Of a DNA stretch of 64,000 bases, positions 35,986 to 43,366 are shown piece by piece (the first letter of the stretch is position 1; the number at the start of each line of letters is the position of its first letter). Both the position numbers and the translations under genes were made by a program. The DNA comes from Macrostomum lignano (Eukaryota). Location: the NCBI GenBank assembly GCA_002269645.1, contig NIVC01000181.1:733114-797113 (forward strand), read 5' to 3'. The notes beneath the pieces are model-generated. The model worked only from the letters and a program-made list of their open reading frames with translations. It was not told the DNA's origin and did not search any database.

Positions 35986-38900
35986 TCAGCTTGATCGGCT
36001 CAGTACGAGCTACTTGTCTGTCTGTCTGCCTGTCTGTCTGTCGTCTGTCTGTTTGTCTGTCTATCTGTCTGTGTCTGTCTGTCTGTCTGTCTGTCTGTCT
36101 GTCTGTCTGTCGTCTGTCTGTTTGTCTGTCTATCTGTCTGTGTCTGTCTGTCTGTCTGTCTGTCTGTCTGTCTGTCTGTCTGTCTGTCTGTCTGTCTGTC
36201 TGTCTGTCTGTCTGTCTGTCTGTCTGTCTGTCTGTCTGTCTGTCTTAGTGTGTGTCTGTCTGTCTGTCTGTCTGTCTGTCTGTCTGTCTGTCTGTCTGTC
36301 TGTCTGTCTACAGTCTGTCTTTCTTTCTTAAGCCCCATTCTCTCCTAAGCTCCATAGACTCACCTCATGCTGCCTGTCCTTATCGTTAATTGCCCATCTG
36401 CGTCGGCAAGCCTACAGAAATGTTAGAAATATTAGTAAACCAGTTTGAATAAGTCTCTCAAGATCAAATGATTTCGTGTTTGAGAGGGTGGAAAACTTTC
36501 GGATTATCAAGCCGCCTCACTCACCCCGCACAGAACCGTAATCCCCAAAACCATTACGCCAAGAAAGTAGACCGCAGTGAATGCCACTATGGCGAATTTC
36601 TCAATTTTACGCGAATCGTATTGACCGGTAGTGGAATGCCAAACAATCAGCAGCACGAGGAACAGGAGATTGTAAAGTATTGCCTTGTCCTGAAAATGAT
36701 GTTTTTTTAAAAAAGGAGAGGCCTTTACTCATACCCAACAAAATAATAAATAGGGTATTCGAGGTATTAGTGTGTATGCAAGCTAGTGTACTTTTAGCCG
36801 GGAGAAGCAACTCGTCAAAACAGGTCAACCGGCAGCATTAAAAATCCAGGGAACATCGATAGAACGAAAGAACATCTGGAGATCTTGTAACATCGAGGGA
36901 GCTACACAAATCTTCTAGACTTACCAATAAAGTGAGGTATGCGATCCTTGGAATGCTATTATTAACCACAAACTTGTATGTAATGGTGGTTAGCAGCAGG
37001 ATGAAAGAGAGCTGCAAGCGACTTTGCAATTTTTTTTGATCCAAGCAAAACGCGCACATGGCCAGTGCGCACAGAATGAACGACACGAGCCAGATGTTCA
37101 CCATGTAGAACACTGACTTTCTAGTCGCTCTGGTTGTAAAGCGCAGCGCCGATCTCTTTCTTGGCCCAATATGGCTGTCCGAATGGATCAACGCCTTGGT
37201 CGCGTCCACGTGTGTGTGCAGATGCCACTCCTGGGCGTCCATAAATGTGTTGGTGAGTACGCGACAAGGACGTTCGGACATTTCATGCAGATCGATTGCT
37301 GAGTTTGGCAGATTGGAGCACACTGTTACCGTTAGATCCTGCAGGTTGTTTTGGGGCATAGAGCTGTTTGATGACGGAGCTCAGTACGTTTAATTCTATC
37401 AAATTCTGTCGTACAGAAGATTTCTATCAAAATTTCTATCAAAAGGAATATACTTCGTTATCCATTGAACTCATTGTATAACGTTGGGAGTAGCAAGGTG
37501 TCCAGCAAGCCATTCCATAATCTTAACGAACCTGCGTGTCGAAAGGAAAGTGCGACAGTTCCATTTGCTCGTGGAATTTGCCTCGAACGCTGTGCTTCTC
37601 TTGTACGAAAGTGTCTCCAGATTCTACTCGAATCACTTCGACTTCTTTTTGGTGCTTGAGGTCGCCAATGCAGTTGTCCACGTAGAGATCTGGGTGCCAG
37701 AGACTCGAAGTGTCAACCGTGGTGACTGCTTTGTCGAGAGCCGGCTCTCGCCATCGCACCTCCAAATATACGGAAGCCTCGAAGCACTCGTGGACCGTGT
37801 CGATGTCACCAATCTTTGTGAATACAATTCGAACCTCCACTAGTCGCTGTTTTTTGGGCGAGAAGGAAAATCGCATCGCTCTTTTTTTAGTTAATTTTTA
37901 ATCAGTGAGGAGTGTACTTATACAAGAATAATCCGATAATTTTAAGGACGCATTACGGACTTGACAGATGCATTCATAGTATTGAATCAACACATACGAG
38001 CGTAGTTGTAGGTTCTTTGATCCCGCCATTAAAAGAGGCCATTTTAGCGGGATCACACAAAATTTAAATCAGTTTTCGTCGCTTTGACACATCTCTGACA
38101 GATAGGCACCAAATAGATTACCTTTTCCCCAGCCTGCTGACCCACTACCGAAGGCGGCGATGCGTCATTGACACATCTCTGACAGCTAGGCACTGTAAAG
38201 GCTCAATTAATTGCGAATGGAGAAAAAGGTTAGGCGTCCACTTAGCCTTGCGTGCTATTATATATTGTGATCGATCGATATGCAATACGATGTACATAAT
38301 GCTAGAAGGCCCAAAGCTCAAGCCGATTGGCTGCAGAGGAGAGAAGAACTGAATGGTGTGGGGGTTTGAATATTGCAAGGGCCAAAGGGTTAAGTTGGCT
38401 GGCGAGAGAGAGAGTACATTGAACAGCGGGGCTGACAAGGGCGCGCAGCGCACGGGGACGGCTCACATCCTTCCCCGAGCGGATTAAAACAGGAATTAAA
38501 AACGTATTGGATGGCAGCTGTCAGAGCGCGAGCGTTTGCGGAAAGCAGACTGATGGATAGACATAAAATCGGTATTGGGTTATTGTAATATTTTTTCACG
38601 GAATAAAACAATTGGGCGAAAGAAAATTATACAAGAGATAAAAAAAATTGCATTAGCCGCATGGCGGATCATCCCCCCCCCACTACAAAAGCGCGATCAA
38701 CCAGTAGCAGTTAAAAAAAGATGATGAGTAAATAAACGCTGTCAAAATGAGTAAAGGCAATGCAAAATTCACTTGTCACAGTATAAGTCAAGTCAGTCAA
38801 TCATTGAAAAAAATTTCAGCGAACCGATCAGATATTCAGATTCCTTGGTCGACCTTTGCACGCGCGTGGATGCGCGCGCTGGGCGATCGCCTCCGGTGGT

Positions 38901-41900: not shown

Positions 41901-43366
41901 CAGCGGGTCAGTAGCGTGGCCGTCGAATTTCGCCTTGACGAGCGGCAGTCGCTTTCTCTGTGGCATCAGGCAGAAAACCTCACAGCTGCTGTCGCTGTCC
42001 TGCTGCTCGCTCTGCTGTTCCCCGGCGATGACGTGCACTTTCCTGGCGCTTATGGGTTTCGACAGGCAAGCCTTAGCAAGGTGTCCGACCTTATTGCAGT
42101 TTCGGCAGGTTTTTCCTTTGGCCGCATCGCAGGTCCGGTGGCCTGGCTCCCCGCACCGGATGCCCTTGTTTCTAGGTCGGTCCTGCTGCTCCTGTCGCCT
42201 TGGCTTCTCGAACCGGCGGATCGCGTTCACGGATTCGTTCTTTCGGGCTTCTATGACAGCGGATTAGAGATCAGCAGCCTCGAACGCTCTGGCCTGCTGC
42301 AGAGCTTCGCTGAGTCCGATGTTCGGCGTCTGCAGGAGCCTGCGGCGCAGCTGATCCGACTGGCAGCCGGCGACGATTTGATCTCGGATGATCGGATCAC
42401 GTTGGGCCTCGAATTCGCTGCCCTCTGCTGCCTTGAACAGGCGCTGAACCCATGCGTTGATAGACTCGCCCGGCTGCTGCGTGCAGTGCCTGAATTCGTA
42501 ACGCACGAACACGGGATTGTGCCGGCTGCTGAAATGTCTCTTCAGAGCGTCCAGGAGCTCGTCAAGAGTCCTGCCGGGATCCGCAAGTTCTGCGTAGGCT
42601 TCGGCGACTTGCTTGCCGCCGACGTAGAGCAGAATTTCGCGCTGTTGAGTAGGGTCCTCAATGCCGCTTGCAGTGACGAAGCACTTGAGACGGTTGGCCC
42701 ATTATGCCCACCTTGCCGATAGGTTATGTGGCTCTTTCTGTGTATCAAAAGGCTCCGGCGGTGGCAGTTGCAAAGGTACAGACATACTGCTAGCGATGCC
42801 ACTGTAAAGGCTCAATTAATTGCGAATGGAGAAAAAGGTTAGGCGTCCACTTAGCCTTGCGTGCTATTATATATTGTGATCGATCGATATCGATATGCAA
42901 TACGATGTACATAATGCTAGAAGGCCCAAAGCTCAAGCCGATTGGCTGCAGAGGAGAGAAGAACTGAATGGTGTGGGGGTTTGAATATTGCAAGGGCCAA
43001 AGGGTTAAGTTGGCTGGCGAGAGAGAGAGTACATTGAACAGCGGGGCTGACAAGCCGCGCAGCGCACGGGGACGGCTCACAGGCACCAAATAGATTACCT
43101 TTTCCTCAGCCTGCTGACCCACTACCGAAGGCGGCGATGCGTCATTGACACATCTCTGCACAGATAGGCACCAAGTAGATTACCTTTTCCCCAGCCTGCT
43201 GACCCGCTACCGAAGGCGGCGATGCGTCCACCAAGTCGAAGTCCAGGTCCGCATTCGGCGTCAACATCTCGATGGCCACATTTTGCCGGGTCTGAACGGC
43301 CGGTTTGTTAGCCAACTGACCGCTGCTGCTAGAGTTGGCCGGCATCGCTGCGCTATAATTGCCCAT
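35986..43366 (-). CDS. Cys-less (Pro-loop) pentameric ligand-gated ion channel, copy 1; exons 43366-43184, 37846-37532, 37338-36925, 36689-36525, 36411-36364, 36009-35986 (~382 aa)
   Basis: [33 protein letters not shown], the Pro-loop [11 protein letters not shown] without flanking Cys, four TMs, M2 [16 protein letters not shown] and M2-M3 [12 protein letters not shown]. All exons are phase 0 with GT-AG. The last two exons are less certain. Confidence 0.85.
36015..36318. repeat. (TCTG)n microsatellite in the last intron of channel copy 1
   Basis: Directly visible. Confidence 0.95.
38085..43228. repeat. Three 84/85-bp tandem units containing the exon-1 3' end and donor site, interrupted by element A
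   Basis: Unit TGACACATCTCTGACAGATAGGCACC...GGCGATGCGTCAT; the same array is at 53578-54107. Confidence 0.9.
38194..43081 (-). mobile_element. Full-length Ty3/gypsy (Mag-like) LTR retrotransposon A in intron 1 of channel copy 1, sense orientation
   Basis: LTRs 38194-38467 (274 bp) and 42803-43081 (279 bp) with TG...CA ends; TSD GGCAC; PBS TGGCATCGCTAGCAG; PPT GGGGAAGGA. Single gag-pol frame from ATG 42785 (CCHC knuckles, protease DSGAS, RT, RNase H DASP, integrase HHCC/DDE) broken by stops at 42704 and 42266 and a -1 shift near 40623. Confidence 0.95.

Follow-up and report, generated by a model that had tools for sequence, protein, structure and literature searches.

Cys-Less Pentameric Channels and the Mlig014474 Gene

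Canonical pLGICs (pentameric ligand-gated ion channels) have a cleavable signal peptide, and their ligand-binding domain and C-terminus are extracytoplasmic. To our knowledge, all characterised pLGICs, bacterial through human, sense their ligands outside the cell. A Cys-less clade has been described among metazoan and protist pLGICs, in which a polar residue stands in place of the first cysteine of the Cys-loop and a hydrophobic residue in place of the second; its metazoan members belong mostly to Lophotrochozoa, platyhelminths included (Jaiteh, Taly and Henin 2016, PMC4795631). Schistosome and planarian Cys-less members are covered by Johnson et al. 2023 (PMC9874803). In the portions of these two texts that were examined, a missing signal peptide, a polybasic tail after the fourth transmembrane helix (M4), and the membrane orientation are not mentioned. 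Here, we describe a gene of this type, Mlig014474, located in a stretch of 64,000 nucleotides of Macrostomum lignano DNA (hereafter, the window).

The minus strand of positions 35986–43366 of the window carries an intact six-exon gene, in which all introns are GT–AG and the phases are compatible. It is the M. lignano gene Mlig014474, and its product has 393 aa when translated from Met8; the protein of the locus and the annotated M. lignano protein are 99% identical. The gene is an already annotated member of a described clade; its orientation in the membrane would be new. The best-supported explanation, on a computational basis, is that both termini of the channel lie in the cytosol (N-in/C-in topology), and we put its probability at roughly 0.6. 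This reading follows from the absence of a leader throughout the family and from a reversed positive-inside signature, rather than from the Met-Gly start or the basic cluster before M1. The first-pass annotation of this single sequence had already proposed a cytosolic ligand-binding domain and C-terminus. The missing leader and the reversed charge support that proposal, whereas the arguments from the Met-Gly start, the pre-M1 segment, and cysteine fail or weaken. The family-wide data support the inversion more strongly than the single sequence did.

A match to the Pfam domain Neur_chan_LBD (PF02931; E = 1.2e-9, 38.3 bits against a cut-off of 26) was found for the protein. The nearest solved structure is ELIC (E = 6.5e-14), followed by GLIC chimeras and animal receptors. 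The AlphaFold2 monomer model has the standard full pLGIC fold, with a predicted local distance difference test (pLDDT) value of 73.5; it is confident over the ligand-binding and transmembrane domains, and residues 1–58 are disordered (pLDDT < 50). The ligand-binding domain is modelled as a beta-sandwich at residues 62–239, and the helices span residues 241–264, 270–294, 303–325, and 331–397, with M4 running on as a single helix through the tail to the C-terminus. Foldseek related the model to GlyR, GABA-A, GluCl, GLIC chimeras, and ELIC with E values of about 1e-18.

The Cys-loop disulfide is absent, as had been noticed at first pass: the two flanks of FPFD carry E154 and L168 in place of the cysteines. 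The Pro-loop FPFD (P162, D164) and the pre-M1 R239 are invariant or nearly so in the family alignments A1 and A2, and the family-invariant residues are all retained in Mlig014474. Its M2 reads R0'-L-Q2'-...-L9'-...-F16', as in ELIC, and lacks the -1' Glu, with QSR at this place in the gene under study (copy 1) and SSR in a tandem copy (copy 2). The M3–M4 loop comprises 14 residues. Mlig014474 is a Cys-less (Pro-loop) pLGIC subunit, closest to the bacterial ELIC. By its residue pattern and the range of its homologues, it can be assigned to the eukaryotic Cys-less Pro-loop clade; homologues were found in Macrostomum, Mactra, Helobdella, Capitella, and Paralvinella (a flatworm, a bivalve, and three annelids). 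A family profile search returned 589 cluster representatives (50% identity) at E < 1e-30, so the family includes at least 589 clusters. Mlig014474 and the published Cys-less clade share the FPxD motif as well as the exchange of the two cysteines for one polar and one hydrophobic residue, and no difference in sequence class was found between them.

The five exons recognised at first pass are all present on the minus strand, and their translation agrees. Exon 1 (43184–43352) encodes a hydrophilic N-terminal segment, predicted to be disordered, with the likely start Met8 at 43345–43343. Exon 2 (37532–37846) extends from beta1 to the Pro-loop, FPFD being encoded at 37549–37538. The rest of the ligand-binding domain, the pre-M1 strand, M1, the M1–M2 loop, M2, and the M2–M3 loop are encoded by exon 3 (36925–37338), within which the basic pre-M1 strand lies at 37167–37114 and M2, with the Q2'/L9'/F16' residues of ELIC, at 37020–36958. 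Exon 4 (36525–36689) contains M3, the 14-aa M3–M4 loop, and M4 (36596–36525), and exon 5 (36364–36411) contains a polybasic juxtamembrane tail that fits the family motif [KR]3-x-M/W-x-x-KD-x-x-[YH]. The earlier model ended in exon 5; this part is to be revised, since exon 6 (35852–35929), encoding IRLLNYASAKGSLQKDTSNSHRLGT and the stop codon, extends the C-terminus, which is then identical to that of the UniProt proteins P0024 and P0025. With exon 6 included, the tail after M4 is 41 aa long. Of the 7.4-kb interval, a long terminal repeat (LTR) retrotransposon in intron 1 takes up about 4.9 kb.

Absence of a Signal Peptide

An N-terminus was regarded as leader-like if its maximum 9-residue Kyte–Doolittle mean was at least 2.5. 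In Mlig014474, this maximum is 0.77, which bears out the earlier statement that a hydrophobic N-terminal leader is missing. The survey of the family was based on the best 150 representatives, of which 86 were kept (Met start, at least 20 residues before beta1, and identifiable M4), and a single bacterial pLGIC clade served as the control set for leader and charge counts. Only two of the 86 members have a leader-like N-terminus, compared with 64 of the 68 bacterial pLGICs.

It had been cautioned that an upstream exon could add a leader. Such an exon does exist; however, it is non-coding. This exon 0 (43486–43659, minus strand) is known from the model P0025, which is translated from it and spliced to exon 1. 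No ATG was found in any frame of exon 0 (about 43659–43486), and an in-frame TAG is located at 43490–43488 in this copy, where copy 2 reads TTG. A TATAAG sequence lies about 30 nt upstream of exon 0 (about 43691–43686), and the 5' end of P0025 suggests that transcription starts near 43659. An LTR element directly upstream of Mlig014474 abuts the promoter, which also speaks for the absence of a leader.

The first-pass annotation took the protein to start with Met-Gly (MGNYS, ATG at 43366–43364). This codon is probably intronic, as it lies inside the 133-nt GT–AG intron 43485–43353 (minus strand, GTGAAA...TTATAG) of the ParaSite/UniProt model P0025. Three NCBI models (including P0001/P0023) and the UniProt model P0024 use Met8 (MPANSSS, ATG at 43345) as the start. 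The fifth model, P0025, joins the upstream exon directly to AAMPANS (...AYLL-D-AAMPANS), skipping the MGN codon, and this junction is compatible solely with the donor GGA/GTGAAA at 43486/43485 and the acceptor TTATAG/C at 43353/43352. Met8 is the first AUG in the spliced transcript. Given that the Met-Gly codon lies within an intron of annotated transcripts, the argument from myristoylation is weak.

Translation from Met1 (MGNYS...), with N-myristoylation tethering a cytosolic N-terminus to the membrane, is nevertheless a reading to be weighed. MGNYSA and the corresponding MGNSQA of the paralogue Mlig001459 fit, when checked by eye, the PROSITE pattern G-{EDRKHPFYW}-x(2)-[STAGCN]-{P}. Moreover, ATGGGCAA is conserved between the two paralogues, which are otherwise only 50% identical, and the NCBI models of the paralogue take MGN as the start, three codons downstream of which on the 5' side of the gene no reading could begin, since an in-frame TAA lies three codons upstream of it. 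However, the conserved bases double as a splice acceptor (TTATAG/C here and CTCTCAG/G in the paralogue), which is used by the ParaSite models of both genes, and the models of Mlig014474 either start at Met8 or, in the case of the fifth, splice across the MGN codon. In addition, an MG start occurs in just 6 of 138 family members, about the frequency expected by chance, and was rejected as a trait of the family. We consider translation from Met1 with N-myristoylation unlikely.

The paralogue Mlig001459 in its annotated form also lacks a signal peptide. An older model of this gene joins the equivalent acceptor in frame to a distant exon with the moderately hydrophobic CAWLLLLLSSL. This upstream exon, CAWLLLLLSSLKAKLLAW, was not accepted as a leader, its hydrophobicity being below the range of the controls, and is retained as a caveat; the model that contains it begins downstream of in-frame ATGs. 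The alternative first exon of the paralogue is antisense to the 5' untranslated region of the adjacent HSBP1 gene (L003, 2588–3542 on the minus strand and 3466–3522 on the plus strand), and the transcripts of the two genes would overlap head-to-head.

In six transcript-like contigs of the family (L001, L002, L004, L005, L009, and L011), the sequence upstream of the ligand-binding domain was read as far as the closest in-frame stop, and no leader was found; in three of them, the first AUG past the in-frame stop gives a hydrophilic N-terminus. A signal-peptide-like upstream open reading frame (ORF) of L001 (MQKAGWQAKRGVLLLLMLFGG...) was dismissed as a chance occurrence, since stops follow it and L005 reads MQ* at this place. 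In L001 (about 295–540), L005 (about 290–540), and L002 (about 115–250), a conserved KLEASFNQ... segment is found upstream of any AUG, just past in-frame stops. A conserved CTG in this region has A at -3 and G at +4, a pattern that points either to non-AUG initiation or to a missing or retained 5' segment.

The N-terminal extensions of the family are hydrophilic and long, reaching several hundred residues, and free of Pfam domains. When 14 unusually long members were scanned against Pfam, no domain of a cytosolic type turned up in their N- or C-terminal extensions; only pLGIC domains and one DUF4706 were obtained. Some unusually long proteins of the family are merged tandem genes.

Charge Distribution and the Post-M4 Tail

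For the charge test, lysine and arginine residues (K+R) were counted in each protein after splitting at alignment landmarks. The median number of K+R in the M3–M4 loop is 2 in the family and 6 in the bacterial controls. After M4, the family has a median of 47 residues, with 7 K+R in the first 25, compared with essentially no residues and 0 K+R in the controls. When the side of the ligand-binding domain is compared with the other side of the membrane, the K+R values are 11 vs. 3 in the family and 5 vs. 6 in the controls, and the net charge is +7 vs. about -1 in the family and +2 vs. +2 in the controls. A K/R excess on the side of the ligand-binding domain was found in all 99 short-loop members, in contrast to 3 of the 69 controls, and this result is insensitive to the choice of the M4 boundary. 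In Mlig014474 itself, 12 K+R are on the side of the ligand-binding domain and 6 on the other.

The tail of the family is polybasic and conserved, with the recurrent motif RRRxMxxKDxxY. The LCGACRRR sequence after M4, in which a cysteine stands beside a basic cluster, is indeed present in Mlig014474; as a family trait, this arrangement does not hold, being found in only 18 of 120 members, and a general role of the juxtamembrane cysteine in palmitoylation was rejected. A basic segment before M1 is likewise present as described at first pass; however, it loses its value as evidence for inversion, since bacterial homologues whose domains are periplasmic are just as basic here. Across M1, the difference in charge (C minus N) is -3 in the family and in the bacterial controls alike, and neither this difference nor the pre-M1 cluster was accepted as an indication of inversion.

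A subclade with long M3–M4 loops consists of P0040, P0041, P0043, P0045, P0046, P0073, P0094, P0119, and P0131. Their loops are 67–178 aa in length and rich in N-X-S/T, and their N-terminal extensions reach about 640 aa and are of low complexity. In P0040, P0041, and P0043, a C-x(7-11)-C pair is located in the loop immediately before the basic pre-M4 helix.

Cysteines and glycosylation sequons were also considered. No conserved Cys pair was found in the family's ligand-binding domain, where a single half-conserved Cys occurs; the number of Cys in this domain is odd in 61 members and even in 60. A conserved N-X-S/T column in the ligand-binding domain was also sought, and none was found. Compared with shuffles of matched composition, the ligand-binding domain and the tail contain fewer sequons (0.76 and 0.80 of the expected number, respectively) and the M3–M4 loops contain more (1.47 overall and 1.9 in long loops). 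These numbers lean weakly in the same direction as the charge data, and their significance is overstated by the relatedness of the sequences.

Membrane Orientation of the Family

If the leader was lost, the ancestral basic pre-M1 flank alone should keep the N-terminus cytosolic. The origin of the inversion may thus be envisaged as the loss of the signal peptide by a bacterial-type channel, after which the basic pre-M1 flank would dictate the N-in state. In the absence of a leader, M1 would act as a type II (N-in) signal anchor, and its +3 N-flank, which is ancestral, would favour this orientation, as would the large size and fast folding of the N-terminal domain. M2, M3, and M4 would insert in turn. 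The ligand-binding domain, the M2–M3 loop, and the basic C-tail would be cytosolic, and the short acidic M1–M2 and M3–M4 loops would face the outside or the lumen of an organelle. For such a channel, residing in the plasma membrane or in an organelle membrane, gating would come from the cytosol, through a small molecule present there, an ion, or pH. The balance tips slightly towards the entire spiralian Cys-less pLGIC family being upside-down, with a cytosolic ligand-binding domain and polybasic tail, and the family likely includes the published schistosome and planarian Cys-less channels.

The alternative is the canonical topology with an extracellular ligand-binding domain, in which either short leader exons have been systematically missed or M1 serves as a reverse (N-exo) anchor, and the basic post-M4 helix is extracellular and packed on the acidic ligand-binding domain. 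Every characterised pLGIC is oriented in this way. The ligand-binding domain is in fact acidic (D+E 16.3% vs. K+R 11.4%), and a basic helix could dock on it. The transcripts without an AUG upstream of the conserved coding sequence, the possible in-frame hydrophobic upstream exon of the paralogue, and the MA-like basic helix before M4 in long-loop members would also fit this topology. Knock-down of planarian homologues is reported to lead to seizure-like movements (PMC9874803), which would fit a classical neuronal receptor. However, the canonical topology requires that leaders have been missed in 84 of the 86 members, while the six transcripts have in-frame stops and no leader, and the upstream exon of Mlig014474 is demonstrably non-coding. 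The N-exo insertion of M1 is disfavoured by its +3 N-flank and by the length of the N-terminal domain, 240 to 900 aa. Finally, a translocated tail with about 7 K/R in 25 residues, together with a net-negative cytosolic loop, would go against the positive-inside rule in each of the 99 cases. We regard the canonical topology as possible, though doubtful.

Several points weigh against the N-in/C-in topology and lower our confidence in it. Since we know of no pLGIC with an inverted orientation, its prior is low. In a few proteins, neuregulin-1 for example, a large N-terminal domain is reportedly translocated although no cleavable leader is present. The basic cluster before M1 is an ancestral feature, uninformative by itself, and the bacterial control set represents one clade. 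In the long-loop subclade, the M3–M4 loop ends in a K/R-rich helix resembling the cytoplasmic MA helix, and the K/R bias is not reversed in 7 to 10 members. Gene models called automatically account for many of the family proteins in databases; the N-termini of L001 and L005 are uncertain, their coding sequence being conserved from a point upstream of any AUG; and the alternative upstream exon of Mlig001459 is in frame and moderately hydrophobic in one older model. The sequon statistics rest on related sequences, which inflates their apparent significance. Within an incomplete coverage of the literature, nothing relevant was found on an inversion of pLGICs, on the positive-inside rule or a lacking signal peptide in these channels, or on Mlig014474, and no paper dealing with the topology of the clade came up.

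Tandem Copy, Transposable Elements, and Neighbouring Features

The second tandem copy of the gene (coding sequence from Met8 to the stop, 51511–54224, minus strand) has a coding sequence 99.0% identical to that of copy 1. Translated from Met8, it equals P0001 exactly (NCBI PAA49613.1 and others; BOX15_Mlig014474g1). The two copies (51511–54224 and 35852–43345) differ at 12 of 1182 coding bases, which gives six amino-acid changes. Three of the six fall within nine codons at M2 positions -2', 2', and 6' (Q/S, Q/K, and I/T). The pattern may stem from diversification of the pore since a recent duplication, or from a patch of gene conversion.

Intron 1 of copy 1 contains a full-length Ty3/gypsy-type LTR retrotransposon (38191–43081, minus strand), whose LTRs (38191–38467 and 42800–43081) are 97% alike. 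The element bears RVT_1, RNase H, integrase, and zf-CCHC domains and is no part of the channel. A solo LTR (53684–53960) is found in intron 1 of copy 2 at the same intronic site, from which it follows that the insertion predates the duplication; copy 2 lost the interior of the element later by LTR–LTR recombination. A unit of about 85–90 bp, comprising the last codons of exon 1 and the GT donor, occurs three times around the LTR in copy 1 (43228–43145, 43171–43081, and 38193–38104) and is also present in copy 2 (54107–53597). These repeats create two extra decoy donors, GAAAAG/GTAATC. A degenerate second Ty3/gypsy-type element (43717–48193), with protease, RNase H, and integrase ORFs and LTR fragments at 43717–43969 and 47838–48193, ends within about 60 bp of the putative TATA box/transcription start of Mlig014474. 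It is also copied at about 54600–58830.

In this environment, one may ask whether Mlig014474 is a working channel gene at all, or instead a duplicate in decay or an artefact of annotation amid transposons. A retrotransposon of 4.9 kb sits in intron 1 with a further element just upstream, and the two copies differ by 6 non-synonymous and 5 synonymous codons. However, the reading frames are intact in both copies, with GT–AG at all splice sites, the family-invariant residues are kept, and the AlphaFold2 model is confident in both domains. Mlig014474 has transcript-based annotation at three assembly loci, and the transposon is confined to an intron. Decay or artefact is accordingly a very improbable explanation.

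Long (CTGT)n microsatellites are located at 236–880, 34430–34620, 36015–36330, and 49934–50282 of the window and at 6190–6400 of L003; they are present in intron 5 of Mlig014474 and in intron 1 of the paralogue. An ORF with ThiF/ubiquitin-activating-enzyme (E1) domains was also noted, with ORFs of the window at 11141–12283 and 32032–33777 (both minus strand). No Pfam match was found for a separate 581-aa ORF of this pair.

Implications and Comparison with Known Systems

If the inverted orientation is true, the family would provide the first case of pentameric "ligand-gated" channels whose gating comes from the cell interior, and a cytosol-sensing clade would alter what the pLGIC superfamily is thought capable of. 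The missing disulfide and glycans of Cys-less channels would be explained. Bath-applied ligands would never reach the binding site, which would account for the fact that no agonist is reported in the papers examined on the clade. Work on the schistosome Cys-less channels, which are proposed drug targets, and on the planarian sensory-neuron channels would be redirected. Macrostomum lignano itself is competent for transgenesis.

Mlig014474 resembles ELIC and other bacterial pLGICs in having no disulfide, a short M3–M4 loop, the Q2'/L9'/F16' residues in M2, and a basic pre-M1 strand. The bacterial relatives differ in having a cleavable leader (64 of 68), 6 K/R in the M3–M4 loop, and almost nothing after M4, whereas in the Cys-less family the leader is missing, the loop carries 2 K/R, and M4 is followed by about 47 aa of basic tail. 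With the canonical Cys-loop receptors (nAChR, GlyR, GABA-A, and GluCl), the family shares the fold, the loop A/B tryptophans, the pre-M1 Arg, and the 9' Leu. Unlike these receptors, which have a 13-residue Cys-loop, it has no disulfide, no signal peptide, and no conserved N-glycosylation site, and it combines a tiny M3–M4 loop in most members with a long basic C-tail.

Two further systems can be compared with respect to orientation. That of insect odorant receptors was reassigned relative to G protein-coupled receptors, and in the dual-topology proteins EmrE/SMR, it is set by the K/R bias. They set a precedent for a conserved fold lying in the membrane the other way round, and for the K/R bias of loops both predicting and controlling orientation. 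These are analogies only, as the folds are unrelated, and the orientation was proven experimentally there, whereas for the Cys-less family it is predicted.

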